This document shows, piece after piece, positions 1,123 to 32,743 of a stretch of 64,000 nucleotides of DNA (position 1 is its first letter; each line of letters opens with the position of its first letter). The notes beneath the pieces are model-generated. The model was not told the origin of the DNA. It did not search any database and worked only from the letters and a program-made list of their open reading frames with translations. The DNA lies in assembly GCA_964019335.1 (NCBI GenBank), contig OZ025667.1, positions 372,001 through 436,000 on the forward strand, read 5' to 3'. This stretch comes from Diplonema japonicum (Eukaryota > Protista > Euglenozoa: Diplonemea). The translations under genes were made by a program, and so were the position numbers.

Positions 1123-3270
1123 ATGTCCGGGAATGCCATAGATCTTGATGCAATTGACATTGATGAGATAGCACCGGAGAAGAAACGGCGACGGTGCCCT
1201 GACAGCGCGGAAAAGAAGGCCAAGCAAGCTAAGACGAAGGACGAGGACGACTATGATCGCAGGATTCAAGAGCGTATGAAGAGATTGCGGGACAAGAGTC
1301 TGTCGCCCGAGCGAGAGAGGAAGCCTATTGAGAGCCACCCCGTACGGGAAGACGAACAGAAGAACGCCCCCCGTCAGCCACCACCTGAGCGCTCTGCGCC
1401 TGTCTTGCAGGCGGACAAGGACGACTTCGAAGACACACCTAATGAAAGCGATCTCATGAAGTCCTCGTTGTGCTTTAGCGAGAGGGACGAGGCGGCATTC
1501 GAAGAGTTGAAAAAGTCAGGGAAGCCTATGACAAAAATCCAAATACAGTTGGAGAAGGCGAGAATGCACAAAGAGCGTGCCAAGAAGCAAGCAAAAGAAG
1601 ATGCAGGATTGAACCCGAAAAAAAGGTTTGGCGCTCGTGCGCGCGAGTACCAGATGATGCGATCAACCGTGACCCACTGGTCAGACAAGACACTTTCGAA
1701 GATGACAGAACGTGACTGGAGGATTCTGAGGGAAGACTTCGAGATTCAGGTACTAGGATCTGGTGCCACGTGCCCCCTACCGATGAGGAACTGGGCAGAG
1801 GGGTACCGGGAAGGGGTACTGTCCCCCATGGTAATGGAAGCCATCAATACAGCCGGTTACAGAGACCCTTCTCCTGTGCAGATGGTATGCATTTTTTAAA
1901 AGTTAAATACTCTCTACTCAAATCAGGCTTGCATCCCTGTCGGCATCAAGAGACTGGACCTTATTGGCTTAGCAGAAACTGGGTCTGGTAAAACCTGCGC
2001 CTTCGTGGTTCCTTTGGTCACCTACGTGTCTGAGCAGCCGCCTATGACAGAGGCCAACCGGGAGCACGGTCCGTATGCTGTGATCATGTGCCCATCGAGA
2101 GAGCTGGCGAATCAAATCGAAGATGAATGCTGCAAGTTTTCACAACCGTTTGGTTTCCGAACCATTTCAGTTGTCGGTGGTGTGAAGCACGAGCAACAAG
2201 GACACGAGATAAGAAAGGGTGTGGAGATCGTGGTAGGCACACCTGGTAGGTTGTGCGATTTGATTGAAAGGCACTACCTAGTATTCAATCAGTGTAACTA
2301 TGTAGTACTCGACGAGGCAGACAGCATGGTGAGGGAAGGAATGGAGGAGCAGGTCGTAACCGTCTTCGAAAACATGCCTTCCTCAAATGACAAGCCAGCA
2401 GAGGCGGATGATGAAGAAATCGGGAAGACAGTATGCTACTTTTCACTTTTCACGCAACACAGTACCGTGTCACCGTCATGTTCAGCTCTACCATGGCCCA
2501 CGAGTTAGAGGGCATAGCGAAGAGGCATCTGCGGCGCCCAGTCATTATCAAGGTCGGGCTGTCTAGCCCCAGCGACATCAAGCAGACAGTCATTGTCATG
2601 GATGAGGCAAAGGACAAAAGAGCGCGCTGCCTTCAGATGCTCAAGGAGATCCTTGCTGGGGTTAGCTCGCCTCTTATTATGGTGTTTTGCAACATGCGAA
2701 CGGAAGTTGAGTCCTTGGGTAACTACCTCGACGAGGAGGGGGTTTCGTCACGCATCATGCACGGTGGCCTGTCGCAGGTATGTTATAGCCATTATTCCAC
2801 ACTCATAACAACTCAACAGGGGCTCCGAGAAGCTGCCATGCAGGACTTCCACGACAGAAAGTACCTGGTATTGATCGCGACAGACATCGTGGGGAGGGGT
2901 ATCGACGTGAAGGGCGTCACGCATGTCTTCAACTATGATTGCCCCGTAGGCGAGAACCCAATCGACAAGTATGGGTTGATGAATACCCGCAACACTTTAC
3001 AGGTACTCGCAGAGGATCGGCAGAACGGGCCGACAGGGTATGAAGGGTGAAGCAGTCACCTTCTTGGTGACCAAGACAGACACGGACATCATGTACGACC
3101 TGAAGAAGAAGGTATGTTATGAATGGGAAATATGAACAAACCAACAGCTTGAATCTGAAGGCCAGGTTGTGCCAAAGGAGCTTGCAATGCAGGAGGCTGC
3201 AAAGATCGCACCTGGGCAGTTGGCAAACAGGAAGAAGCGAGAGACGGTCATCCATGCACGCACGTTCTAG
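1123..3270 (+). CDS. PRP28: DEAD-box RNA helicase PRP28/DDX23 (U5 snRNP 100K); 5 short introns
   Basis: HWSDKTLSKMTERDWRILREDFEI (Prp28-specific N-terminal block), AETGSGKT, PSRELA, GTPGRL, LDEAD, ATDIVGRGIDV and RRIGRTGR after joining GTATG..CAG introns. Confidence 0.93.
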
Positions 3271-3337
3271 GGGTCTTTGCTTTCAGCAAGAAGTTTTTTT
3301 TTTTTTTTTTTACTAACAAAGCATACTCCACGAAGGG

Positions 3338-5146
3338 ATGGGGGACACATCGTTCACAAGTGACCTCAGCAAGCTGGGCTTCACTGACCCAGTGATATGG
3401 GTGACTCCTCCGGAGCCGAATAAGATGCGGCTGTTCGTCAGAGTGAAGGGAAGCTCGCCGTTTGTGTTGATGTGTGAAGACAACTTACTTCTGGAACACT
3501 ACAAGGAGATTGCTGTAAAGTACTTTAGAGAGCGGTGGACGGGAGTTAGGCTGTGCCCTGAGCTCATACTAATACGATGCCTTAACTTCAACAACAAGGA
3601 CAGGCTGTTGGACTTCAAAAGGAAAATCCGCCATCAGTATGGTGAGACGAGCAAGGTCTATGCTCAGCCTGTTGAGAATGCAGATGTGTACAGCGAAAGC
3701 TTCAACGCAGACTACATCAAACAGAACATGGTAGTCACCGACCCTGCGACAGCACCGTTGATCGAGAATTGCGAAACTGAGCTCGTAATTAAGTATGCCG
3801 CCTGCTTCTTCTCAATATTGACAGAAATCTGAGTCTCGACCGATTGATCATCAAGATCACCGATCCCAACACGGCACGCTACGTAGAGGAGGTGTTCTGG
3901 GACACGTACAGGGAGTTTGCAAGACCTCAGGTTGTGCTTCAAAAGCTGATAGAACGGTATGTTTAAGTAGCTCTCTCAAGCTAGACAGGTACGAAGTGCC
4001 GCCTCTTGTAAAGATTGGTGACCCGCAGAAGAGCCCTGCCGACCACGCCACGCACCAATTTATGAAGTATGGCATACAGATGAGAGTTGTGCGGCTGTTC
4101 GAAAAGTGGGTAGAAGATGCCTATTTCGACTTCACGGATGAGATGCAGAAGACACTGTCGAGATGGGTGCGTAACAAGATCGACAAGGACGGCATCCCTC
4201 CAAGGCTGCTCCACCTTATGAAGCAGAAGGAAAGACAAAGGAAGCCCCTGTCGCAATACACGGTGCCGCCTCCTCCCGCGCTGTCACGTGCTGACTTTGA
4301 TCCGTTGTTGGTAAGGGAGCCTGTCAGAGTTCTTTCCACTTATAGTGACAAGGAAATTGCGCAGCAGCTTACGCTCCTCACCTTACACGTATGCAGGTGA
4401 AAGTGCTCAAATTTAAACTCAAACTCAGATACACAACCATCTTCTGCCTTGCGAGTTCATGGGTTGCAAATGGCTGCCTGGCAACGGTGCAGGGTATGCT
4501 GCAATGTTTTAACACACACCACCACAGGCACAACGCACCTAACTTCCGAGTCTACAGGGACATGATTAACAAAGTGGCTAACTGGACACAGTTTGCCATT
4601 GTGAGCGAGGAGGACTTCGACACACGAGTGAATATTGTGAAGAAGCTGTACCTGGTGTGCCAAGAGCTGAGGACGATGACCAACTGGGACATGCTTGTGG
4701 CAGTACACGGCGGGATGTCAGCGCTGCCTAGTACCACACTGCGCAACACGCACTATCAAGTTGAGAACAGTGAATTAGGGCCTTTGGTAAGCGAATTAAA
4801 AGAGATTCTTGCAAACCAAGGTAGAAGCAAGTTGCTTTTAGACTACATGGCAAAGCAGCCCGAAATACCACAACCTGTCTTCCCTTCGATTGTTGTGTGC
4901 CTCAAGCAGTTGGAGTACATGGAAGAGCACCCGGCTGAGGTCGACGGGCAGATCAACTTCTTCCGCATGGCTCTCGAACACAACCTCATTAAACACCTTC
5001 TCAATGCCAAGGGTACCACCTTGCCGTACCAGCCTATACCAAAGCTCCAAGCAGTTTTCACTTTGTTCAAAGTTAAGGATCAGCAAGATCTTATTGCCAT
5101 GGCCTACAGATGCGAGCCACCTCAGAACGAAGCTTATTATGATTAG
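3338..5146 (+). CDS. RasGEF domain protein (REM + CDC25 domains), intron-containing
   Basis: Spliced REM-like TYREFARPQVVLQKLIERYEVP and MRVVRLFEKWVEDAYFDF; CDC25-like EIAQQLTLL, NWDMLVAVHGGM, DGQINFFRM. Confidence 0.8.
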
Positions 5147-22819: not shown

Positions 22820-25240
22820 ATGAAACAGTCCCAGTGTGACTGCAGGTTTAGTACTGGGGGGAAATGGTGTGGATCAGACCTGAGTACTGTGTGGTGTGAT
22901 GGCTGTGAGAAAGGTACGAAAGAGCTACTACAAGGCTGCAAGCTGGTGAACAAAAAACATCTCGTGCGGTCAAAGGAGGGTATGCCTGTCCCAGTTTACG
23001 GAGGGAATGACAATAAAAACATTGTGGGTGTGATGACGCACGATCATGTGATGTTGTGTGATGAATCCACGGAGAGGATAAGAATCCGAATGCCGCATTG
23101 CGGAAGTCAAGATCATTTTGTGGAAAAGGATAAAGTCTCCTGTGATAATTGTTCGTATTTCGACCCTGCAGCGTACTTTGTCTACAAGAAGTTTGAAGAG
23201 ATCAACACACACCTCCCTGTTCACTCTGCGTTCACAGTGGCCAAGTTTCGTGCCCATGTTGACTTCCCCCATGAGAAGCTCAAAGCCTTTAAAGTAGTTG
23301 TAATCCTGTTCACAGATATGATGAATAACGCGGCAAAAGAGTGTTTTGAAGAGATTTTTTTTTGCAGTATTCGGAAACCCGAGGGAAAGAACATGCTTGA
23401 TGTAATTAACAAGGTGCAAAACGAGCAGTCGTCGCAAGGGATTATAGCATGTCGCTGTTTGAAAACTGCTGAAGATGAGAGGCGCCTGAACCTTGTGTTA
23501 GATATCAGACGTGTCTGTGAGGGTTTGAGCCAGTTAAGTAGAGAGGCCGATACAAAAAACATAGACCTTCTACTGCAGCAACTCAGAAACAACAAACCAA
23601 CTGAAGTGGAGGAAACAGATTTTTCGGGGTACTTTCAACACGGATTGCCGGTAAATTTCAGAAAGGAGCTTGACGAAAAGTCATCTCAGAAGCAAACCTC
23701 ACCGAACTCCCAATTAGTTTACAAAGCCCCGACTACATCAAGTCAGCTTGCTGCAATACTGCGCCCGAATACACCAGCCAAATACCTCAAAACAACAATA
23801 GATGTCAGCTGTGATGATGGCGTCCTCCCGGATGGTACTAAGGTTGTGGCGACAATATATGGGTTCATACAGGATCAGCAAAAAAAAGAAACCGTGAAAA
23901 ACATGCACTACTACACAGTGACTGACTCTGAGATGCCCACAGATATTCCAAGTGCAGAAACGAGCGACTGGGTGCAGATCCCTCCAAGTTACACCCATCT
24001 GGTGTTCCCTGAGGTTAATCTTGTTGTTATGGATGAGAATAGAAAGGCCAGAGTACGTGCCAGAGTACGTGTCCCCCACCTTGTGGAGGAGTGGTGTGAG
24101 CGCGAGAAGGAAATTAAAATAGGTCTTCTGTTTCTATTTGGGTTTGTTTGTGACTTCGACAATGGCTGGGTGAGTACAGAGAATGTGAAACAGGTTGTGA
24201 CGAGCATCCGCCTTCCAATGTATGATTCTAGTATCAAAACTGTGCTGCAGAAAATTGAAAAGGAGGCAAAAGGGCCGTTCCCAATTCATAGCTCGTTCTA
24301 TTTTCCAGAGGGTTTGGGTCCGGAAATCACGACGGATGGCATCAGACGAAAGGAGGAAGATGTAGCGGAGGCAAAAAAAAAGATACACCGTTTTCAACAA
24401 AAAACCTGCAGTGGGGATGCAGCAGTGGTTGTGATTCTGTTCCCACCGATCGGGGAAGGTGCTCCGGACGAAAAACAAGAAGAGGCTCACCATCGCGAGC
24501 TAGAGAATTTGTTGGGAGAAGATTTTGTGGTGCTACGGTACAGGGAAACGGCGGCTAAAGTCTTGTTGAATGGATATGGCAGTTTTATCAAGAAACAAAA
24601 ACCGAACACAAACAAGTGGACGCGGCTCCCGCCAAAACAAGAGCGTTATTTGGGATACGTTGACGACTTAGTGAACGCGGTAAAACAGATAACTGTAAAG
24701 GGTGCGGACCCCACCTTAGACCATCTTATAGGTAGTCTAGCTCTTGATGTCCAAAAGATGCGCTCTAAGACTATGCCAAAACCTTCTTCGTGGGAGGGCC
24801 TCGGAGATTCAGTAAATCACTATGCTACCATCATCCCAATGATATCATCAAGCAGCCAAGAAACTAAAACGGTTCTGAACGGCTACCTACCCACGAAACT
24901 ACTTTGGAACGTGTCTCTCGGAGCCAAACATATAGCTTCTGTGTGTCCCTTTGCATGGATGGACATCTCTGTTGAACCTCTTTATACGGATAGGTACGGA
25001 GGCTGGCACTTGGTAACCTCTGCCGATCAATGGACTTTACCTGGAAGCAACGTGATTAGAACCGGCAGGCTTAGAGGATACCACCGAGTCGCCTTCAAAG
25101 ATAATAAAAAGAGCCCCATTTCAGTAATCAATTCCAGTAATGATGGCGTGTGTCTTCCAAAGGTTACGTCGGGGGTTCTTGAGGTGGACCCACAAGGAAT
25201 CTATGCTGTTAGGCATAATCCGTATGGCACTGTCAACTGA
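22820..25240 (+). CDS. Orphan intronless 806-aa protein with Cys-rich N-terminus
   Basis: Long uninterrupted ORF; CDC..WC..WCDGC N-terminus; no recognisable domain; flanked by G-tracts and transposon remnants. Confidence 0.55.
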   Translation: MKQSQCDCRFSTGGKWCGSDLSTVWCDGCEKGTKELLQGCKLVNKKHLVRSKEGMPVPVYGGNDNKNIVGVMTHDHVMLCDESTERIRIRMPHCGSQDHFVEKDKVSCDNCSYFDPAAYFVYKKFEEINTHLPVHSAFTVAKFRAHVDFPHEKLKAFKVVVILFTDMMNNAAKECFEEIFFCSIRKPEGKNMLDVINKVQNEQSSQGIIACRCLKTAEDERRLNLVLDIRRVCEGLSQLSREADTKNIDLLLQQLRNNKPTEVEETDFSGYFQHGLPVNFRKELDEKSSQKQTSPNSQLVYKAPTTSSQLAAILRPNTPAKYLKTTIDVSCDDGVLPDGTKVVATIYGFIQDQQKKETVKNMHYYTVTDSEMPTDIPSAETSDWVQIPPSYTHLVFPEVNLVVMDENRKARVRARVRVPHLVEEWCEREKEIKIGLLFLFGFVCDFDNGWVSTENVKQVVTSIRLPMYDSSIKTVLQKIEKEAKGPFPIHSSFYFPEGLGPEITTDGIRRKEEDVAEAKKKIHRFQQKTCSGDAAVVVILFPPIGEGAPDEKQEEAHHRELENLLGEDFVVLRYRETAAKVLLNGYGSFIKKQKPNTNKWTRLPPKQERYLGYVDDLVNAVKQITVKGADPTLDHLIGSLALDVQKMRSKTMPKPSSWEGLGDSVNHYATIIPMISSSSQETKTVLNGYLPTKLLWNVSLGAKHIASVCPFAWMDISVEPLYTDRYGGWHLVTSADQWTLPGSNVIRTGRLRGYHRVAFKDNKKSPISVINSSNDGVCLPKVTSGVLEVDPQGIYAVRHNPYGTVN

Positions 25241-26438
25241 TGAGGAAGCCTCCCCATATTTTTCCTGAACAAGTGATGATCTTTTTCGAGATGCCTACGA
25301 CTCCAAGCAATGTTTCTCGCCCAGATGCCGTCCATCTCATCGCGACAAACAGCCACCGCAGGCACCAGACAGCAACCGCAGAACGGTGACCGATTAGTGT
25401 GAATTTCTCCCTGAACGGTGAGCACCCACCCGCACACCGAAATTTATCAAATTTACTTTTTTCTCGTTCTTCTTGATTTATCAGTCTGCTCTCTGACGCT
25501 TCCTGAGTTTTTTTACGGGGGGGTTGGGGGGGTTGGGGGGGGCTATTGCACTCGACGACGTCCACCCTTTTGGCTACAACTGTATGCATTTTAGGACAGA
25601 AACAGGGTTTTCTTCGGAAACCAGTCTATGAAGTTTTATTTTTGAAAACAGTCATGACTAACAAACAAAAAGGAGATAAGTTTTTACCTCCTCTTCCCCC
25701 CCCCTTTTTTATAACCACGATCAAATAGAATTGACACGGGTTTAGTAGTGTTGTTCACTTGCCTTGATTTCATTTCCTTGTTTTCTTTATTGATGTTATA
25801 GCTTTTTGCGTTCATTTTTCAGGTGGTGGTGGTTTGATGATATGTTTTGTTTATCCACCAACCCTTTTTGTTTTTGTTGGTAGAGGATGAGAACAAGGGG
25901 GCGTCTCACAAAGACTTCCTTTAACTCATATATTTGTTTTGCACAGCCGTGTTTCACACGGGAAACCAAACACCAAGCCTTTGGAACATGCATGCACGTT
26001 GAGTAACTCACGTGTCAGTTACCATGGTGCGGTTGTTAATGCTTCTTCCTCCCTGCTTTCAATTTTTTTTTCAACCATTTCTACCTCTTTTTTTATGGTC
26101 ATTTTTTTCCACTTGCATCACCGCTTACAACTGGGCATCTTCTCATCTTAGTTCTGAGCTAAGTGTTTGACTATCAGGTTAGTGCCATTCACATTTGAAA
26201 AAAAGAACTTTTATTCCCTGGGCATCTTCGTCTGCTGTTGGGTCTCATTCGTTCGACAAAGAGCCTTACAATTGTGTTTGCTAACAACCCCTCACTGCCC
26301 CCACCCCCTCGTCCCACGACCTCACTTTCACGCTGCTTTAGTGCGCAAAGAAGCTACCCTAAAAAAACACCGCTCTCAGCAAACAGAAGGAAAACCCGCC
26401 CACCTCCAACAGGTTTACACACTGTTTCATACGTGAAG

Positions 26439-26795
26439 ATGCCTCTGGAAAAGGATAACGAATCACACAAACAGCTCTCGAACGGCCAGGATGTTGCAGC
26501 TACTTCGATCAGTTTTCTTGACCAGTTGAAGAATACCTTGAAGTACGAGAAACACAAGTCAAGCCATATCATTGAGGAAAGACTGAGGCATGGATTTAGA
26601 GAATTCAACCTTCAGAGCAGTACCTTTCGGGGGAGAGGTTGTGATAAGAACATGGCACAACGGAAGTTAAAAAGAATGGCGGATCGATGCGGCTTACTTG
26701 AAGAGGATGTTTCTCTCGTGGAAGCAGGTGTTGAAGAATGCTCTTTGGAGGGCAAGTGCTACTTACTTAAATCCAGTAACTACCAACGATTCTAA
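26439..26795 (+). pseudogene. ORF fragment truncated by the SL-module junction
   Basis: MPLEKDNESHK.. reading frame runs into the SL copy at 26782 and stops inside it (TAA 26793-26795). Confidence 0.4.
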
Positions 26796-26819
26796 AGCTA
26801 CAGTTTCTGTACTTTATTG
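26782..26819 (+). other. Spliced-leader exon copy (38 nt, lacking first nt), module 1
   Basis: ACCAACGATTCTAAAGCTACAGTTTCTGTACTTTATTG carries the conserved euglenozoan SL 3' core CAGTTTCTGTACTWTATTG and a diplonemid-type 5' part. Confidence 0.9.
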
Positions 26820-26968
26820 GTCGTTCGTGTTCTGCTGGTGCCTGCCGCCTCTGCCTGGGTTTGCCGCTGCGTCCGTCGTCGCCGTCGTCCGGGGGGGTTG
26901 CTTTGCCTGTCGGCCTGCCCGCCGCTTGAGAAAAAAAGGGGTGGGTACTGGTGTATGGTGAACACCCT

Positions 26969-26995
26969 GCAAACCCGCAAACCCCGCAAACCCGC
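26969..26995 (+). repeat. Short (GCAAACCC)3 octamer tract between the two SL modules
   Basis: GC AAACCCGC AAACCCCGC AAACCCGC; same unit and same 4-C variant as the long array at 29241. Confidence 0.9.
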
Positions 26996-27069
26996 AACGA
27001 TTCTAAAGCTATCCCACCAACGATTCTAAAGCTACAGTTTCTGTACTTTATTGTTTCTGTACTTTATTG
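26996..27069 (+). other. Stacked SL exon copies (5' fragment 26996-27011, near-full 27016-27053, 3' fragment 27053-27069), module 2
   Basis: AACGATTCTAAAGCTA-TCCC-ACCAACGATTCTAAAGCTACAGTTTCTGTACTTTATTG-TTTCTGTACTTTATTG. Confidence 0.9.
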
Positions 27070-27239
27070 GTCGTTCGTGTTCTGCTGGTGCCTGCCGCCT
27101 CTGCCTGGGTTTGCCGCTGCGTCCGTCGTCCGTCGTCGCCGTCGTCCGGGGGGGTTGTTTTGCCCGTCGGCCTGCCCGCCGCTCAACGAAAGGATCCCCT
27201 CCCCCCCATCACACACTATAAAACAAAAAAAAAAAAAAA

Positions 27240-28760
27240 ATGGATCCAAGACGACTCGCAGGAGGAGGTGACCGCAGCCGCAGCCCGCAGGAGCAAGCCC
27301 GCAGCCCGCAGTGCACGGCACCGAGACCCACCCAACCAGGCAATCTGGTTGGGCAGTATGAATCCCCACCCCCTAGATCCCCCCACCCCCCTTTAGAAAA
27401 AAAAAATAATAAAAAAAAAAAATCACAAGTAGAGACCGCGGTTTTGACCGCCACAACCAAGGGAGCAGCAGCCCCTGCTACAGCCACGGCCGCCCCGGCC
27501 GCAAGCACGACTGCTGCAGCAGCCCCAGCCGCACTGAACGCCGCAGCCGCCCCTGCCGCAGCCACGACCGACACAACCACGATCGCCGCAGCCGCCCCTG
27601 CCGCCTTGAACGCTGCAGCCGCCCCTGCCGCAACTGAGACAGCCGCAGCCGCCCCTGCCGCAAGCCCGACCTCCGCAGCCGACCCTGCCATAGTTGAAGA
27701 GGAAAAAAAAAAGAAGAAAAAGGGGGAAGGGTGGATACTGAAAGATGGTGAGCACCCCCCCGGGTTGAAGACAGGTGCTGCCCCCGCCTTCCCAGAAGCT
27801 CTGCTGTCCGGGAAGTGGGAGGCCCTGTCAGGGAACACGGGGAGGGAGACGCTCCAGCATGGGCACCGGTGGGAGGGGACGGACGCCGAGGTGCACCCCA
27901 CCACCGGCATCCCAGGGGAGGCAAAGGGGTGGGTGAGGGAGGTGGCCGCCGCCGCAGGGCTCAAGGTGGTCCCCAACCAGGTACTTGTGAATAAGTACAG
28001 ACCTGGTTGTGGGATTGCCGCCCACAAGGACGACGCAAGACTGGGACCGGTCGTCCTAGTCTTGTCGTACGGGGCTGAGACCACAATGGTCATGAGGAAG
28101 GGGGACAGGGTAGCGAGGTACCTGGTGCCCCCCTTCTCATGGGCACTGTTGGAAGGCGAAGCGAGACACCAGTGGACACACCACATCCCGTCAGGGGTGT
28201 CCACTGGTGTCAGGGTGTCGATCACCCTGCGTGCGGTTGGCCCCGAGCTCACCCACATACCCCCCCAGGAAGACCCACCCCCTGGGCTAACAAACGAACC
28301 CCCCCCTTTTTTTTTAGAACCCTCCACGGAGGTAAAAAACAGACCCTCTTCGGAGGAAAATGGAGAGAGAGGGGAAGAGGCAGCGCTCCCAAAAGAGGGT
28401 AGTGTTCCTCCCCCCCATTTGTCCCCCCCTTTTTCATTTTTAGAGCCCTCTTTGGAGGAACCCTCCACGGAAAACAGACCCTCTTCGGAGGAAAATAGAG
28501 AGAGAGGGGAAGAGGTGGCACCCCCGAGAGAGGGTAGTGTTCCTCCCCCCCATTTGTCCCCCCCTTTTTCATTTTTAGAGCCCTCCCCAGAGGGACCCTC
28601 CACGGAGGTGAAAAACAGACCCTCTTCGGAGGAAAAAAAGGCAGAGGGAGAGACAGCACGCCCGAGAGAAGGTAGTGCTCCTCCCTCTCTGCCCCCCATT
28701 TTTTCTGGACCCTCTACGGAGTGTACACCCTGGTCCCCAAGGGCCGGGGGCTTTTTTTGA
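27240..28760 (+). CDS. AlkB-family 2OG-Fe(II) dioxygenase with Ala-rich N-terminal repeats and Pro/Glu-rich C-terminal repeats
   Basis: PNQVLVNKYRPGCGIAAHKD (HxD), VLVLSYG, LLEGEARHQWTHHIP (distal His) and RVSITLR (Rx5R) form a complete AlkB motif set at about 27800-28240; intronless. Confidence 0.85.
   Translation: MDPRRLAGGGDRSRSPQEQARSPQCTAPRPTQPGNLVGQYESPPPRSPHPPLEKKNNKKKKSQVETAVLTATTKGAAAPATATAAPAASTTAAAAPAALNAAAAPAAATTDTTTIAAAAPAALNAAAAPAATETAAAAPAASPTSAADPAIVEEEKKKKKKGEGWILKDGEHPPGLKTGAAPAFPEALLSGKWEALSGNTGRETLQHGHRWEGTDAEVHPTTGIPGEAKGWVREVAAAAGLKVVPNQVLVNKYRPGCGIAAHKDDARLGPVVLVLSYGAETTMVMRKGDRVARYLVPPFSWALLEGEARHQWTHHIPSGVSTGVRVSITLRAVGPELTHIPPQEDPPPGLTNEPPPFFLEPSTEVKNRPSSEENGERGEEAALPKEGSVPPPHLSPPFSFLEPSLEEPSTENRPSSEENRERGEEVAPPREGSVPPPHLSPPFSFLEPSPEGPSTEVKNRPSSEEKKAEGETARPREGSAPPSLPPIFSGPSTECTPWSPRAGGFF
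28315..28715 (+). repeat. ~120-bp tandem repeat x3 within the AlkB ORF
   Basis: Recurrent CCCTCCACGGA..AACAGACCCTCTTCGGAGGAAAA..GGTAGTG.TCCTCCC encoding PSTE..NRPSSEE..EGS.PP. Confidence 0.85.
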
Positions 28761-29240
28761 GGGTGGAAGGGAAAGAAAAAAAAAAAACAAACAAGGAGGA
28801 ACCTTTTTTCTTTTCAAACAACCAGGGGGACCCAGCACCCGCCCCCACCGCCTGCCAAGGAGGCTGCGAGCGACGTGAGAGCACCACTGCACACCCTTGT
28901 GAGAAGACAGAAAAGAGCCCCCTGGATTGCCATGGGTGGCAGGGAACCTAAGCCAGCGCCCAAGCGGAAGAAGAACAGGAGGAGGCACAGGAGCGAAACG
29001 GCCCTTCAGAGGCGTCGGGAGAAGAGGACCAAGGCGAGGGAGGGGGCGAGGGAGGCTGCCAGACAGGAGAAGAAAAGGCACCGTCGTGCGAGGAAAGAAG
29101 GGAGGAGGAGGGCCCGCAGAGAGGAACACGAGGCCGCCCTGGAACAGAAGCCAGATGACCCTGCAATGGGGCTGAAGCTGACCGAGGTGGGAACGCCTGG
29201 AGCCCAACCCCTGGCACCCAGAATCCCGGCACCTGGGGCT

Positions 29241-29537
29241 GCAAACCCGCAAACCCGCAAACCCGCAAACCCGCAAACCCGCAAACCCGCAAACCCGCAA
29301 ACCCGCAAACCCGCAAACCCGCAAACCCGCAAACCCGCAAACCCGCAAACCCGCAAACCCCGCAAACCCGCAAACCCGCAAACCCGCAAACCCGCAAACC
29401 CGCAAACCCGCAAACCCGCAAACCCGCAAACCCGCAAACCCGCAAACCCGCAAACCCGCAAACCCGCAAACCCGCAAACCCGCAAACCCGCAAACCCGCA
29501 AACCCGCAAACCCGCAAACCCGCAAACCCGCAAACCC
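29241..29537 (+). repeat. (GCAAACCC)n octamer array, ~37 units, running into the assembly gap
   Basis: Perfect tandem AAACCCGC units with one 4-C variant; reverse strand reads (GGGTTTGC)n. Confidence 0.97.
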
Positions 29538-29737
29538 NNNNNNNNNNNNNNNNNNNNNNNNNNNNNNNNNNNNNNNNNNNNNNNNNNNNNNNNNNNNNNN
29601 NNNNNNNNNNNNNNNNNNNNNNNNNNNNNNNNNNNNNNNNNNNNNNNNNNNNNNNNNNNNNNNNNNNNNNNNNNNNNNNNNNNNNNNNNNNNNNNNNNNN
29701 NNNNNNNNNNNNNNNNNNNNNNNNNNNNNNNNNNNNN
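29538..29737. other. Assembly gap (200 N)
   Basis: Run of n characters. Confidence 0.99.
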
Positions 29738-30846
29738 TCCAGTCCGCAGTCGTTGTCGCTGGTGCAACCATCAGCCTCAACCGCTCGAGGGGTCAATACT
29801 GACAACTCGGTATCGGGTTCAGGAGTGGGAGCAGGAGTAGGAATAGGAGTAGGGGCAGGCGTGGGAATAGGAGTAGGGGCAGGTGTAGGAATAGGAGTAG
29901 GAGCAGGAGTGGGAATAGGAGTAGGGGCAGGCGTGGGAATAGGAGTAGGGGCAGGTGTAGGAGCAGGTGTAGGAATAGGAGTAGGAGCAGGCGTGGGAAT
30001 AGGAGTAGGGGCAGGTGTAGGAATAGGAGTAGGAGCAGGAGTGGGAATAGGAGTAGGAGCAGGCGTGGGAATAGGAGTAGGGGCAGGAGTGGGAGCAGGA
30101 GTAGCAACGGCGCTCTCTTTCTCGTAGTTAATGCCCGCACCCCATCCAAGACCCAGACCCGTAAAGAAGTTTGCCTTCCCACCCGGGACAGCCTCCAATC
30201 CGATGCTCCACCCAAGCCCAACAGAGGGGGTGAATTGGAAGTTCCCTACCTTCAGCCCCTCGTACGCGACACTGAAGCTGATCGTCACCGTGAAGAGCGC
30301 GCACCCGAAGTTCGCGTTCGCTTGTGAGGCGCAGAGGTACCCGATCGCACAGCAGTCCTCCAGGGGCTTCACCATCCTCCGCTTCTGGTGGTTCTGCTGC
30401 GCCTCGAGGAGCATCGCCGCCCTGTTCGCCGAGGCAGTCGTCGAGTTGCACTGCCCGGAGAAGGTGCGGATGTAGGGCTTCAGGCTGTTCGCGAGGTCGG
30501 GGATGTCTGCCAGGAAGGTTTCGACAGTCGCGGTGTCTTCGAAGAACTCCATCAGCCCGTCCGCCGCCTCCACCGCTTTGTCCTTCAGGGTGTTCAGCTG
30601 GTCGAGGGCCCCCGTCACCGCCTCTATCGCCTCTTGCACCCCGAGGGCCTCCAGCACCTCGTCCGCCCTGTCCGCAAGGGCATCCGCCACGGCCCCCCTG
30701 AAGGCGTCCACCGTGTCCGCCAGCGACGTGGCCAGCGACGTCACCGTCAGCGGCTCAGAAGTCGACGTCGTTGAGGGCGCTGTGTCCTGCGCCCCTGCAA
30801 GGAGCGCAACAGCCAACGCCAGCAGTGCTGTCTGCAAGATTCTCAT
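29738..30846 (-). CDS. 5' part of the 2406-aa array gene, truncated by the gap
   Basis: Identical N-terminal ~370 aa (signal peptide to PT repeats). Confidence 0.85.
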
Positions 30847-31390
30847 TTCTCTTTCTTGTTGGCCTCACACGGAAGGGGGTTTCTTTCTCTTTTGTTTTTA
30901 TTTTATTTTTGTGTGTGTGTGTGTGTTGGGTTATAAACCTGGAGTGAGATGAAAACGTGAAACACAAAGAAAAAAAAAAGGGGGGGGAAAAGAATAGAAA
31001 GAGAGGTAGTAGAGGAAGAGGAAGAGAAGATGGGTGTGATCCGAAGAATGGCGAGTGTCCTAGTGTATAGCTGTAACCTTTACACACAAAGAAAACAGAC
31101 TACACACAGGAAAACTAAATTACATTTTATCGGAGAACCCTTCATATAGAAAGAGGAAGCAAAAGAGAAACAAACAGGAGGGAGGGAGGGAGGGAGGGAG
31201 GGAGGGAGGAGAAAGAAGATAAGTCAGCTAGATAGAGTGCAGGTTGGCCAGCATCGCAAAAATCTCAGAAGACAAAAGGTTAAAAATCTGTAAGGTCGAT
31301 ACTCGGCTTTTCGTTAGTATACTAGATACAAGATATAGGTCTTTTTGCGAGCTCTTTTGTTCTCATTTATGTTTGCAAAGGAAAAAAAGA

Positions 31391-31484
31391 TAACGCCCCA
31401 TATCTCTAAAACCCGTCACCAACCCTGAGGGGATGCTTCTAGGGGGGGGGTGTGCTAAACGGGTTTTAGAGATATGACGGCGTA
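31391..31484. mobile_element. 94-bp hairpin/MITE in the array spacer (also 40509-40602 and 49639-49732)
   Basis: TAACGCCCCATATCTCTAAAACCCGT ... ACGGGTTTTAGAGATATGACGGCGTA: an 18-bp perfect inverted core extending to ~25 bp, with TA at both ends. Confidence 0.7.
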
Positions 31485-32743
31485 ATGGTTTCTCTTTCTT
31501 CCTTGCCCCTCTTTCTTCTTTTGCTTCACTTTAAAAATTGGTCACTTCTTCATGGTGTATTATGCGAAAACCTGACCATATTCAAAGTAAAAGGGCAACA
31601 AGAAAGGGGAGAGTCCTTGTGGAAATTGCGACATTTGCACTCTGTTGTGTCTTTAAAAACAAGAATTGTTCGCAGAAATAAGGGAGGGAGGGAGAGGGGG
31701 GGGGGGGGGGGGGGGGATCAATTACTGTCAAGAAGAAATACTTGTTGATGAAAGAAAGGTCAAAAGTTAGAAGAAACCACGGGACTAAAAAGTATCTACC
31801 GAGGTTGCTCCTTCCTTTCGCTCCCTTTCATTCTTTTTTTTTTTTTTTGCAATTTCTTATTTAACAGTGACATGAGAGAGGGGGGGAGGGGGCGACAGAA
31901 CATAAGGCATTCCAAGTCTATAAGGGTATAAAAAAAGAGGGGAAACAAGCTAAAAGCTCTGTATTCTTTTTTTTTTTTTTTTTTTTCCTTCTCTTTTTTC
32001 TGAGAAGAAAATTAAAGAATTTAAAAGAACAAGTTAAGATAGGGATAGGAAAAAAATAAAAGTTTTAAAAAAGAAAGGGAGAGCGTCTCAATAAGAGCGC
32101 CAAGTGTATTTATTTTCAACGGACACCGTAAACCTCTTAATCAATACCCCCTTCCTTCTTTGTTCCCCTGAGCCAAGCTTCTTTTCTCAGTGAGCACCCC
32201 CATGCACACTGAAATTCTATCGAGTTTTCTTTGCGTTCTTCATGAATCTCTCGGCTCAGGGGGGAGGAAGGGGAGAGGAAAAAAAGAAGGAGAATATATA
32301 TCAAGAAGAAGTTTTCTATCTAATATAATTCCTTGCAAGCAGCTGTTGAAGAAGAAATTGTTTTTCTTTTTTTTTTTTTTTTTTTTTTTTCCGTTCTTTT
32401 TTCTTTTTTGCGTGAGGAGAAGGGGTGCCAATGATATATTAAAACCCCTGGTTTTAAAAAGAAAATCAAAGCATCACTTCCCCTCTAGCAAAAATAATAG
32501 GAGGAACAAAAATTGAGGAAATAGCAAAGAAAAAGGGGAAGAAGATGCTGGGAACGGCAAGAAAAGAACGACATGGCGAAGAGAACACAAATCTACTTCA
32601 TCCTTTTCGTTGGTGTCGTTCTTAATCTCCGTTTCTCCATTCTTCTCCAATCTTTTGTTTCTCAACTAAACCTCTCGTTTCAACGCTGTGGGTCATCTTT
32701 TTTTATTTTCATATATAATATTTTCATTCTTTTTTTCCTATCT

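Follow-up and report, generated by a model that had tools for sequence, protein, structure and literature searches.

Non-LTR retrotransposons that are telomere-targeted, carry a restriction-like endonuclease (RLE) and are related to SLACS/CRE have been described as MoTeR1/2 in Magnaporthe oryzae and as FoTeR in Fusarium oxysporum. MoTeR copies form head-to-tail arrays with 0.5 to more than 20 telomere repeats between them, and ends lost to erosion undergo de novo healing (PMC7367193). The SLACS, CZAR and CRE1-2 elements of trypanosomatids insert in the exon of the spliced leader (SL) RNA gene and carry only the part of the SL that lies before the insertion site; SLACS-like reverse transcriptase (RT) gene models were reported in the D. 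papillatum genome paper (PMC10161547). Drosophila HeT-A, TART and TAHRE, jockey-clade elements that stand in for telomerase repeats, attach by a 3' oligo(A) and have their 5' end distal. The 5' end is likewise distal in the Athena/terminons of bdelloids, which are primed by a G overhang and have a Penelope-type RT without endonuclease. Here we describe a locus in a 64,000-nt stretch of Diplonema japonicum DNA (the window), where a contig end with every mark of a chromosome end probably holds two truncated copies of a young, telomere-associated non-LTR retrotransposon.

On the plus strand of the window, host DNA is followed by copy 1 (187 bp left), a three-repeat relic, copy 2 (2.2 kb left) and a cap; all parts that an earlier note listed for 26782-29537 are present, at their places and in that order. 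The host-side flank (26439-26781), the proximal border of the chain, is single-copy by contig depth, which in runs X2 and X5 stays flat at a level 250-700 times below that of the element. ORF 26238-26795 reads into the first SL copy, which cuts it off. A search of the window upstream of this flank found no SL. Copy 1 starts with a DNA-encoded SL (nt 2-39; 26782-26819) identical to the exon of the SL RNA genes L077 and L079, followed by a family-specific 5' leader (26820-26927) that starts with GTCGTTCGTG and contains one GGGTTTGC. The short body that the note placed next (26928-26968) proves to be a 41-nt internal piece of ORF1, matching longer copies (100% to L066rc 2410-2450, 97.6% to L065 2438-2478), and copy 1 is therefore internally deleted as well as 3'-truncated. 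Three units of GCAAACCC, one with an extra C (26969-26993), and a subsequent GCAA make up a relic cap (26969-26997), which starts in the register of all terminal arrays.

Ahead of copy 2, a partial SL (nt 5-20; 26996-27011) overlaps the octamer by AA and is followed by TCCC, ending at 27015. We read it as a template-switching by-product at the 5' junction; comparable stacked 5' SL fragments are found upstream of other copies. A second SL (nt 2-39; 27016-27053) is followed by a duplicate of SL nt 24-39 (27054-27069), as would result from trans-splicing of a fresh SL to the CAG (nt 21-23) within the DNA-encoded SL of the parent copy. The leader of copy 2 (27070-27183) is identical in kind to that of copy 1; the two modules do share it, as the note held, although its length is about 107 nt and not 110. 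Next come ORF1 (27240-28760, 506 aa), with an AlkB-type 2OG-Fe(II) oxygenase domain at about 27828-28232 (Pfam PF13532) and a 135-nt tandem repeat at 28317-28685 (TRF), and a basic ORF (28932-29240). The latter, present as reported, represents part of the longer ORF1 extension seen in the L066-type subfamily and stops before the OTU domain into which the same frame continues in L066 (PF02338, E 1.7e-12). Positions 27017-28454 are 96.6% identical to L064 2465-3907 and positions 28300-29244 are 94.5% identical to L066rc 3056-4018, where the element goes on for about 4.8 kb; the end of copy 2 at 29240 is an internal coordinate of the element. It is capped by a terminal-type array, (GCAAACCC)37 (29241-29537; TRF, 99% matches), and this 37+ tract is cut off by a 200-N scaffold gap (29538-29737). 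As the note had it, both bodies meet the octamer at CTGCAAACCC and neither octamer tract in the window is preceded by poly(A). Chance is excluded for the SL (its 19-mer was found three times against 0 expected in shuffles) and for the octamer dimer (36 against 0.03).

The leader begins with GT, like the SL RNA intron, and an Rfam search of the window gave no match for or against SL RNA. An authentic SL RNA gene, or an artefact of assembly or cDNA contamination, is nevertheless a reading to which we give next to no weight and which is already refuted by the genuine SL RNA genes elsewhere. These (L077 and L079) are uninterrupted, lie in tandem with a unit of roughly 350 bp and show a conserved upstream region, an Sm-like site, a terminal hairpin and a T-run; promoter region, Sm site, hairpin and T-run were looked for at the leader and are absent. 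Their intron begins with GTACCC, unlike the leader, which is indeed not SL RNA intron. The leader moreover continues into ORF1 and ORF2, and every copy has different flanks. As for an artefact, the assembly is HiFi-based (PMC13598402), and the junction 26781/26782 between host DNA and SL is contained in contigs from two runs, one of them from a separate study of the same organism, which span 26300-26807 and cross the junction by 26 nt without difference.

A non-LTR retrotransposon family with many copies has the SL and its leader of about 107 nt as its 5' end. The genome contains 60 exact SL|leader junctions, and our copy search scored 47 out of 275 candidates. Copies start at SL nt 2 in 28 of 46 SL sites and at nt 3 in 11; more than 40 SL-headed copies start at nt 2-3, beside unrelated upstream DNA that differs among all of them, and were therefore made by reverse transcription, which reaches SL nt 2-3, of an SL-bearing RNA, as had been proposed. 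A genomic parent with the leader behind an AG acceptor instead of the SL, which the note had envisaged, did not turn up: the genome-wide search found no leader without SL, and there is no AG acceptor at the exact SL|leader junction. Most copies retain exactly one SL. At nine places in the genome a fresh SL is joined to SL nt 24-39, and in one copy, re-spliced at the other AG (nt 16-17), to nt 18-39; the re-splicing positions are the two AGs within the DNA-encoded SL. The motif GGGTTTGC occurs in the leader of 27 of 28 distinct copies, and 11 of 28 copies are interrupted within 1.4 kb. In chains, the next SL comes immediately after a 3'-truncated element, in some cases with octamers between and in others without. 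The element is young and apparently active, and in an RNA-seq-like run the leader contig is covered about 50-140 times as deeply as the flanking gene.

ORF1 of full-length copies contains the AlkB domain, to which OTU is added in one subfamily. The Pfam match has an E-value of 3.9e-14 (53.8 bits, cut-off 31.2), and the best PDB matches of the domain are ALKBH8, ALKBH6, ALKBH3 and AlkB, with the HxD...H iron ligands aligned; in the match with ALKBH8 (E 2e-8) AHKDD and THH of the element align to AHIDT and THG. By sequence, the domain belongs to the AlkB family of 2OG-Fe(II) oxygenases, with a predicted double-stranded beta-helix and HxD...H ligands. A search for sequence relatives of the element's AlkB domain found none.

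ORF2 has an R2-like layout of RT, zinc knuckle and RLE. Longer copies with an RT, which the note suggested looking for, do exist: Pfam identifies RVT_1 in ORF2 (E 1.3e-16), the best PDB sequence matches are R2 proteins, and the nearest database proteins to the RT are metagenome and lepidopteran RTs with an identity of 37% or less. The motif order is C-x4-C-x10-H-x3-C-x6-RHD-x19-E-x10-RPAD-x15-D, with C610, C615, H626, C630, H638, D689 and K719 invariant and E659 and R670 near-invariant in 35 homologues. The nuclease spacing is, with small differences, close to the published SLACS/CRE/MoTeR REL motif, quoted in PMC12857005. An AlphaFold model of ORF2 (pLDDT 87.8) superposes on entire R2 proteins along about 885 of 901 columns (TM 0.59-0.64), and Foldseek matches it to R2Tg, R2Bm and R2Pm with E-values of 1e-20 to 1e-24, LINE-1 ORF2p ranking behind. 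Pfam, which gives RVT_1 only, and the fold search showed no sign of an APE nuclease in ORF2. Motifs and model thus point to a non-LTR RT with a predicted C-terminal RLE in R2-type architecture, and what the note took for a new system of RT-less cDNA modules is better described as an autonomous R2-like non-LTR element, of which the window contains truncated copies. Across the 901 residues of ORF2, 100% amino-acid identity is shared by at least 19 copies, in open frames of 1,500-3,000 aa; with invariant RLE columns and ORFs intact in so many copies, the nuclease appears to be under selection. At no fewer than eight scaffold-end places 5'-truncated copies begin at residues 404-530 of the 901-residue query, which, as expected, fits incomplete target-primed reverse transcription.

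Such uniformity among many copies, together with three copies at an exact spacing of 6,021 bp on C99, could also result if the copies spread chiefly as DNA, through break-induced replication or subtelomere gene conversion, and the SL-headed units were old, shuffled retrocopies; such processes are documented for MoTeR arrays (PMC7367193). We consider this unlikely. All 33 array-start junctions examined and all 5' flanks differ and the units were therefore placed independently, the ORFs are open, leader-bearing contigs are plentiful in the RNA-like run, and the re-spliced SL forms are copies that were transcribed and then copied again. Identity among copies could owe partly to recombination between chromosome ends.

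The chromosomes end in the 8-base repeat (GCAAACCC)n. In one polarity it terminates at least 31 scaffold ends of the assembly, on scaffolds of 0.2-1.2 Mb whose body lies on the SL side; C76 shows an array at both ends, and on C4 host genes directly adjoin the array. Hardly any RT copy or SL|leader junction lies more than about 13 kb from a scaffold end; they stand on the minus strand at scaffold starts and on the plus strand at scaffold ends, and the association of copies with the octamer that the note described holds genome-wide. Eleven terminal-type arrays were examined, ten at scaffold ends and one beside a scaffold gap: eight abut sense-strand element sequence, cut at different coordinates, and one sits straight on host genes. 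Terminal copies are 3'-truncated, at eight different coordinates. At chromosome ends the copies stack head-to-tail and point outward with their sense strand. Distally, their 3' ends are cut back at arbitrary points and capped by (GCAAACCC)n in constant register; every array start in the fetched loci has the register GCAAACCC, and short octamer tracts separate some modules. In every terminal array of the assembly the C-rich strand runs 5' to 3' to the end. We know of no precedent for a 3'-terminal C-rich strand, which is opposite to every telomere described to date. A TERT candidate is present in the genome.

The scaffold-end positions of the arrays bear on the model of the earlier note, in which reverse transcription starts, in the manner of Athena/terminons or HeT-A, from the G-rich 3' overhang of a canonical telomere. 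Modules would then be added outward, the SL end would be distal and the chromosome body would lie beyond the array. Locally the geometry fits, with C-rich repeats after the sense strand, complete 5' ends and a fixed register, and the window array abuts a scaffold gap with more sequence past it. That sequence, however, begins inside a gene of a 9.1-kb tandem repeat and looks like an ordinary contig break. The model is very unlikely and already contradicted by the 31 or more array-ended scaffolds: the chromosome body lies on the SL side, and Athena-like overhang priming therefore does not fit. Against it stand also the arrays at both ends of C76, the host genes beside the array of C4, the single-copy host DNA on the left of the window locus and an RT that is R2-like, with RLE, and not Penelope-like. 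A Hi-C join across the gap at 29538, if correct, would turn the window array internal, which counts against our own reading of it as a chromosome end.

In the mechanism we favour, the element RNA would consist of the 39-nt SL, the leader of about 107 nt, ORF1 (AlkB demethylase-like, with OTU in one subfamily) and ORF2 (RT, knuckle, RLE). The RLE would nick the G-rich strand (GGGTTTGC) of a terminal array and the resulting 3'-OH would prime cDNA, as proposed for MoTeR/FoTeR and TRAS. Since the G-rich strand has its 5' end at the terminus in this genome, cDNA synthesis would head inward, which would leave the 3' end distal and the SL end proximal. That the mechanism depends on this unprecedented polarity, as seen in the assembly, counts against it. 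The 3' end would then be eroded and re-capped by a telomerase-like activity, and a next copy, landing in or near the base of the new cap, would leave a short relic. We infer use of the endonuclease from conservation alone, because no nicking site or new insertion was observed. Most 5' junctions of copies adjoin non-octamer DNA; plain insertion into an array would predict octamers there, unless insertion deletes target DNA. Where an octamer is found at the 5' joint, an AACC/AAACC overlap between the repeat and the SL start is used.

The 5' joints may also be read as endonuclease-independent end capture, which is possible but doubtful. Here a cDNA that has reached the RNA cap would template-jump, SL first, onto an uncapped or capped chromosome 3' end or, in an equivalent form, the chromosome 3' end would serve as primer for a second strand copied from the cDNA; the point where the cDNA began would become the new terminus and then be octamer-capped, a true mirror of HeT-A/TART healing. 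R2-type RTs perform efficient end-to-end template jumping. Many 5' junctions join arbitrary DNA without octamers (host DNA in the window, internal element sequence elsewhere), the stacked partial SLs suggest serial template jumps, the octamer joints show the overlap just mentioned and all 3' ends differ. Variable 3' ends are equally explained by erosion and healing, however, and microhomology at the joints suits both models. The free cDNA would also need a primer of its own, and the invariant catalytic columns of the RLE, together with ORFs intact in at least 19 copies, argue for a nuclease that is kept by selection.

Taken as a target-primed, telomere-associated RLE element, the family can be compared with several known systems. 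It shares a DNA-encoded SL as the mark of a retrocopy with the relict-SL retrogenes of dinoflagellates ('recycling of processed cDNAs'): its copies have an exact 5' SL and stacked SLs from AG re-splicing, and in both cases the stacked, truncated forms come from splicing of a fresh SL to an AG within the DNA-encoded SL. The dinoflagellate cases concern ordinary cellular genes in another phylum, whereas here the SL heads an autonomous retrotransposon. Plant flexivirus replicases contain AlkB with an OTU-like protease, and the element likewise carries an AlkB oxygenase. AlkB stands beside OTU in some replicases of Tymovirales, as it does in the element. An orchid Ty3/Gypsy element also carries AlkB (PMC9289625), again on an RNA-based replicator; from these the present case differs in being a protist non-LTR element.

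With the bdelloid Athena/terminons the element has in common a sense strand followed by reverse-complement telomere repeats, a telomeric location and accessory ORFs, but it has an R2-like RT with RLE and the opposite chromosomal orientation. A Penelope-like identity (no endonuclease, or GIY-YIG), to which the note had pointed, is ruled out by the R2-like RT and nuclease and by the proximal SL end. Its other suggestion, SART/TRAS (R1 clade, with N-terminal APE and a poly(A)-telomere junction), is ruled out by a nuclease that is C-terminal and RLE-type, by the lack of any sign of APE in the Pfam and fold searches and by junctions without poly(A). Drosophila HeT-A/TART/TAHRE also form head-to-tail terminal arrays in which the distal end of the older copy is eroded before the next arrives; the element differs in its proximal SL (5') end, in the short-repeat cap that persists and in the presence of a TERT candidate in the genome. 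SLACS/CZAR/CRE1-2 share the euglenozoan host, the RLE-type non-LTR organization and the association with SL. The distinction that the note drew from them stands: the SL RNA genes are intact elsewhere, and the copies lie at chromosome ends and have the whole SL from nt 2-3 as their own 5' end.

The closest known kind are the telomere-targeted RLE elements MoTeR/FoTeR, a likeness by layout and motif. Both have an RT followed by a CCHC...RHD...E...PD...D nuclease, occur only or almost only at chromosome ends in head-to-tail arrays with short telomere-repeat tracts between, have a distal end that is cut back and repeat-capped, through erosion and de novo healing in MoTeR and probably in the element, and have truncated non-autonomous relatives. 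In both, sense strand and C-rich repeat strand run in the same direction, and C-rich repeats directly follow the 3' end. The orientation is mirrored because the C-rich strand of every terminal array here runs 5' to 3' to the end: in MoTeR the 5' end is nearest the chromosome end and erosion 5'-truncates (PMC7367193), whereas in the Diplonema element it is the 3' end that is distal and truncated. The 5' end of the latter is further distinguished by a DNA-encoded SL in place of telomere-like repeats, and its ORF1 by AlkB, with or without OTU.

Direct reading of the sequence at 26300-29900 bore out the order of elements proposed in the earlier note. A copy of the 39-nt spliced leader (SL) at 26782-26819 is followed by a leader that ends at 26927, a 41-nt body, a relic of three octamers (26969-26993, one with an extra C) and a partial SL. 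A full SL at 27016-27053 then precedes a repeat copy of the SL's last 16 nt, the leader again, an ORF of 506 aa (27240-28760), a basic ORF starting at 28932 and (GCAAACCC)37 at 29241-29537, which abuts a gap of 200 N. According to TRF and pattern searches these repeats lie far above chance expectation; an Rfam scan of 24000-32000 gave no match at E<=1. The 506-aa ORF contains an AlkB-type 2OG-Fe(II) oxygenase domain (PF13532, E 3.9e-14) with iron ligands that line up with those of ALKBH8, and a homologue search with this domain returned zero matches. The second module (27016-29240) shows 96.6% identity to genomic locus L064 across SL, leader and ORF1. Over its final 0.9 kb it shares 94.5% identity with the subfamily of locus L066, where the element goes on for about 4.8 kb, hence module 2 is 3'-truncated in the basic region, ahead of an OTU domain. 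Module 1 combines SL and leader with 41 nt from the interior of ORF1 and, judged by its sequence, is an internally deleted and 3'-truncated copy. The minimal chain in the window thus runs from host DNA through module 1, the three-repeat relic and module 2 to the cap.

Exact junctions of SL and leader number 60 genome-wide, a similarity search for the two together scored 47 among 275 candidates, and the DNA 5' of the SL differs in all copies where it could be read. Longer copies with a reverse transcriptase (RT), as envisaged in the earlier note, were found at L064, L065 and L066, which run from ORF1 into an ORF2 of 1,636 aa with RVT_1. In the L066 subfamily ORF1 is longer and extends through the basic region into an OTU-like cysteine protease domain (E 1.7e-12; L066:4661-7228, minus strand, scaffold C42). 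Among database relatives of ORF2 with extra domains, the nearest, P0002, likewise has OTU. The 34 homologues of ORF2, at most 37% identical, came from metagenomes and moths, and in their alignment with ORF2 the CCHC, H, D and K columns 3' of the RT are invariant. The order of these conserved columns fits the restriction-like endonuclease (RLE) motif quoted for SLACS, CRE, MoTeR and FoTeR (PMC12857005). R2 was the top PDB sequence match, and about 885 of 901 columns align between the AlphaFold model of ORF2 (pLDDT 87.8) and complete R2 proteins, which rank above LINE-1 ORF2p. A search of the ESM Atlas with ORF2 yielded generic RT clusters only, and NCBIfam gave only weak matches, to group II RT and AlkB. 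At least 19 genomic copies share 100% amino-acid identity over 901 ORF2 residues, in open frames of 1,500-3,000 aa, which argues that the family is young. By sequence and predicted fold, then, the SL-headed family is an autonomous retrotransposon.

Two further arrangements of RT sequences were noted. At C99:344510-359080 three full RT-RLE matches lie on the plus strand, spaced exactly 6,021 bp, as a head-to-tail tandem of near-identical units. At the left end of scaffold C7, another RT-bearing ORF of 903 aa (L072:2952-5663, minus strand; RVT_1, E 2.8e-21) lacks DNA similarity to the SL-headed family, points outward and adjoins a terminal array.

At 46 sites, the match to the SL starts at nt 2 in 28, at nt 3 in 11 and at nt 1 in seven. 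Two of the seven nt-1 starts are genuine SL RNA genes, and the extra A of the other five may belong to the flank. In trypanosomatids the first nucleotides of the SL RNA are modified to form cap-4; by analogy with this chemistry, a stop of the copy at nt 2-3 would fit an RT unable to copy the first, cap-modified nucleotide. A full SL is fused to SL nt 24-39 in nine copies, module 2 among them, and to nt 18-39 in one copy. The SL has just two AG dinucleotides, and each breakpoint falls immediately 3' of one of them, from which we infer that the DNA-encoded SL of a parent copy was transcribed and that a fresh SL was then spliced at an internal AG. The same 'relict SL' pattern is known in dinoflagellate retrogenes. 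The joint between SL and leader itself lacks an AG, yet most copies retain exactly one SL. Speculatively, a single SL could be kept by a homology-guided template switch inside the SL onto another SL-bearing RNA, and the stacked partial SLs could be by-products of such switches.

The leader is not the intron of the SL RNA, which disposes of the chief condition that the earlier note had named as refuting its reading. Genuine SL RNA genes lie elsewhere (L079, C15:777562-780223; L077, C4:648572-651606). In them a conserved upstream block precedes the 39-nt exon, and the intron begins with GTACCC and features an Sm-like AAUUUCUUG as well as a GC hairpin, together with a T-run; on C15 and C59 they are arranged in tandem, about 350 bp apart. 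Patterns with non-G, or with non-T plus G, before the leader retrieved no SL-less parent, so a genomic 'parent' equipped with an acceptor site is absent from the assembly. Other SL-headed sequences were also encountered. L076 (C2:149078-152112) combines the SL exon with the greater part of the authentic SL RNA intron; its upstream flank is unrelated and is itself preceded by a long A-run, its downstream flank diverges, and the locus looks like a retrocopy of unspliced SL RNA. A second SL-headed family, in which the SL is followed by GTGTCCGACC, occurs at L078, L081, L082 and about 28 places, is dispersed and chromosome-internal, and in L081 forms a short unit, about 190 nt long, with a terminal A-run. 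Two smaller groups continue from the SL with GTGGTGGGG or GTAGAGCGG. GT stands right after the SL in all these additional groups.

Junctions of SL and leader, as well as RT-RLE matches, are almost confined to scaffold ends, on the minus strand near coordinate 1 and on the plus strand near the high end (scaffold lengths were confirmed for C3, C11, C15, C38, C68, C75, C76, C84, C102 and C105). The sense strand therefore points toward the chromosome end. Internal sites are few, and that of the window adjoins a scaffold gap. The earlier note had proposed reverse transcription primed by a G-rich overhang, which requires chromosome beyond the octamers; this is contradicted by the positions at scaffold ends, where the arrays are the last sequence. 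Many SLs are preceded by an older, 3'-truncated copy that has the same orientation and meets the SL either directly or across a few octamers. Joints between octamer and SL use an AACC/AAACC overlap. An octamer tract or the next SL interrupts 11 of the 28 distinct copies within 1.4 kb. On scaffold C38, the ORF2 of a copy that points outward is unbroken except for five inverted octamers (GGGTTTGC; L070 8944-8983, C38:579944-579983) in place of a few bases, which look like the trace of a break that was healed or of an insertion that was aborted.

The octamer arrays that end scaffolds measure 88-1,170 bp. One pattern matched 36 array starts, 31 of them at scaffold ends, and the upstream 17 nt, readable for 33, were all different. 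Statistics on 3' ends were drawn from 14 loci and from 35-nt strings obtained by pattern searches. Among the 11 terminal-type arrays in fetched loci (ten at scaffold ends, one beside a gap in C7), eight abut sense-strand sequence of the element, each truncated at a coordinate of its own. The left-end array of C7 adjoins the other RT-bearing element, at the left end of C4 about 0.7 kb separates the array from host genes (peptidyl-tRNA hydrolase, glycosyltransferases), and the eleventh is on C3. The register is GCAAACCC at every array start read in these loci; one array starts on an A-run, which itself provides the AAA. This is the pattern of ends that would have eroded and then been healed through de novo repeat addition. 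A candidate TERT was recognized by Telomerase_RBD (PF12009; 28.4 bits vs the 25-bit Pfam cut-off) at C41:533974-534300, in a frame of 1,086 aa. A CR1-like, element-encoded 3' tail was rejected as the origin of the octamers, because 3' ends differ per copy and one array lies directly on host genes. Spread of truncated copies via read-through RNA with an octamer tail was likewise dismissed, since no junction is common to two copies.

In 27 of 28 distinct copies the RNA sense strand of the leader includes a single perfect GGGTTTGC, which is complementary to the terminal repeat (26857-26864 and 27107-27114 in the window); roughly 0.002 such occurrences would be expected by chance in about 107 nt. 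A role as telomerase-like template was discarded, as it is a single unit without an alignment region and the loci contain no array followed by antisense leader. A role in tethering is possible.

At all ends seen, (GCAAACCC)n runs 5' to 3' toward the terminus (29241-29537 in the window, C1:1-384, C4:1-328, C3:999806-999969, both ends of C76, and others). Hence the G-rich strand, which resembles the plant-type TTTAGGG, has its 5' end terminal and the C-rich strand would be 3'-terminal. To our knowledge, all described telomeres have the opposite polarity. Ends of canonical polarity were absent among the scaffold ends, at least 31, that were considered; both ends of C76 and the element-free end of C4 agree in polarity. 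Since the ORFs translate normally the sequence is not mis-stranded, and the inverted polarity appears to be a robust feature of the assembly. A metagenome scan for four octamers found 22 loci, all short internal microsatellites without SL, hence with no bearing on polarity. The assembly was built from HiFi and Hi-C data with YaHS, and its genome note mentions neither telomeres nor the octamer repeat nor SL-headed elements (PMC13598402).

In the window, the contig before the N gap (29538-29737) has a telomere-type end, and the one placed after it by the Hi-C join begins within a gene belonging to a 9.1-kb tandem repeat; the join may be wrong, or else the array may be a genuine interstitial one. 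The tandem repeat occupies 29820-64000 with a period of about 9.12 kb and at least four copies (TRF landmarks 29820, 38938, 48068 and 57186), each with a minus-strand ORF containing a Pro/Thr-rich 24-nt repeat. A comparable join exists in C7 near 204.5 kb (L073). Scaffold joins beside octamer arrays, that of the window included, merit re-examination.

Sequencing runs were viewed as Logan contigs. The junction of host DNA and SL, which the earlier note wished to see confirmed, is spanned by contigs from two runs, one of them from a separate study, that cover 26300-26807 with zero differences and reach 26 nt into the SL. Depth over the SL exceeded that over the single-copy flank by a factor of 260-700 in each of two DNA-like runs; in a third the factor was about 14,000, so that this run behaves like RNA-seq. 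In this third run a leader-specific contig had a depth of 184 vs 1-4 for the flanking gene; if the run is RNA, the family is therefore expressed. Run X10, recorded under another organism name, contains identical SL RNA gene flanks, leader pieces and abundant octamers, and stems from a close relative, or else from this organism under a different label.

Literature searches with the octamer in all permutations returned primers and unrelated matches only, with no paper on it as a telomere; the SL sequence had no match, and no description of an SL-headed, AlkB-bearing LINE was found. AlkB within a retroelement has been described in Gypsy elements of orchids (PMC9289625). The family thus looks like the first well-supported autonomous retrotransposon with a host SL heading every copy. 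It offers a natural system for asking how a mobile element gains or keeps a trans-spliced cap structure, how hypermodified caps are handled by an RT, and what function an AlkB (and an OTU) serves when borne by an element. The polarity, a side observation, may be weightier than the element itself. Telomerase synthesises the G-rich strand, and if the C-rich strand truly is 3'-terminal at all ends, this would be an exception to that rule in a cultured organism.

On the simplest reading, with the chemistry of MoTeR, FoTeR and TRAS, the RLE would nick the G-rich strand and the freed 3'-OH would prime the cDNA. As this strand is inverted relative to the chromosome, synthesis would proceed inward and leave the SL end proximal, and the distal 3' end would then erode. 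The main rival is endonuclease-independent, the finishing cDNA capturing the 3' end of the chromosome, and it accounts better for the fact that most 5' junctions lack octamers. A wider, joint reading we offer tentatively, as a possible but rather doubtful whole. Diplonemid ends would mirror all described telomeres, their 3'-terminal strand being the C-rich (GCAAACCC)n, for which a GGGUUUGC-type template would be copied by a telomerase or RT; a dedicated SL-capped, R2-like element attached SL-first would extend or buffer these ends; its AlkB would remove methyl groups from bases of the RNA body or of the hypermodified region at the SL cap and so let the RT reach nt 2-3; and the single GGGUUUGC of the leader would pair with the terminal overhang.

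Telomere-targeted RLE elements, in the literature found so far fungal only (MoTeR, FoTeR), would now cover a very abundant group of marine protists. In MoTeR, FoTeR and TRAS, as in the SL-headed family, the C-rich strand is the one colinear with the sense strand, and C-rich repeats adjoin the element's 3' end. With respect to the chromosome, MoTeR is the exact mirror of the family described here: its 5' end lies nearest the chromosome end, and its 5' truncations are healed by telomerase (PMC7367193).
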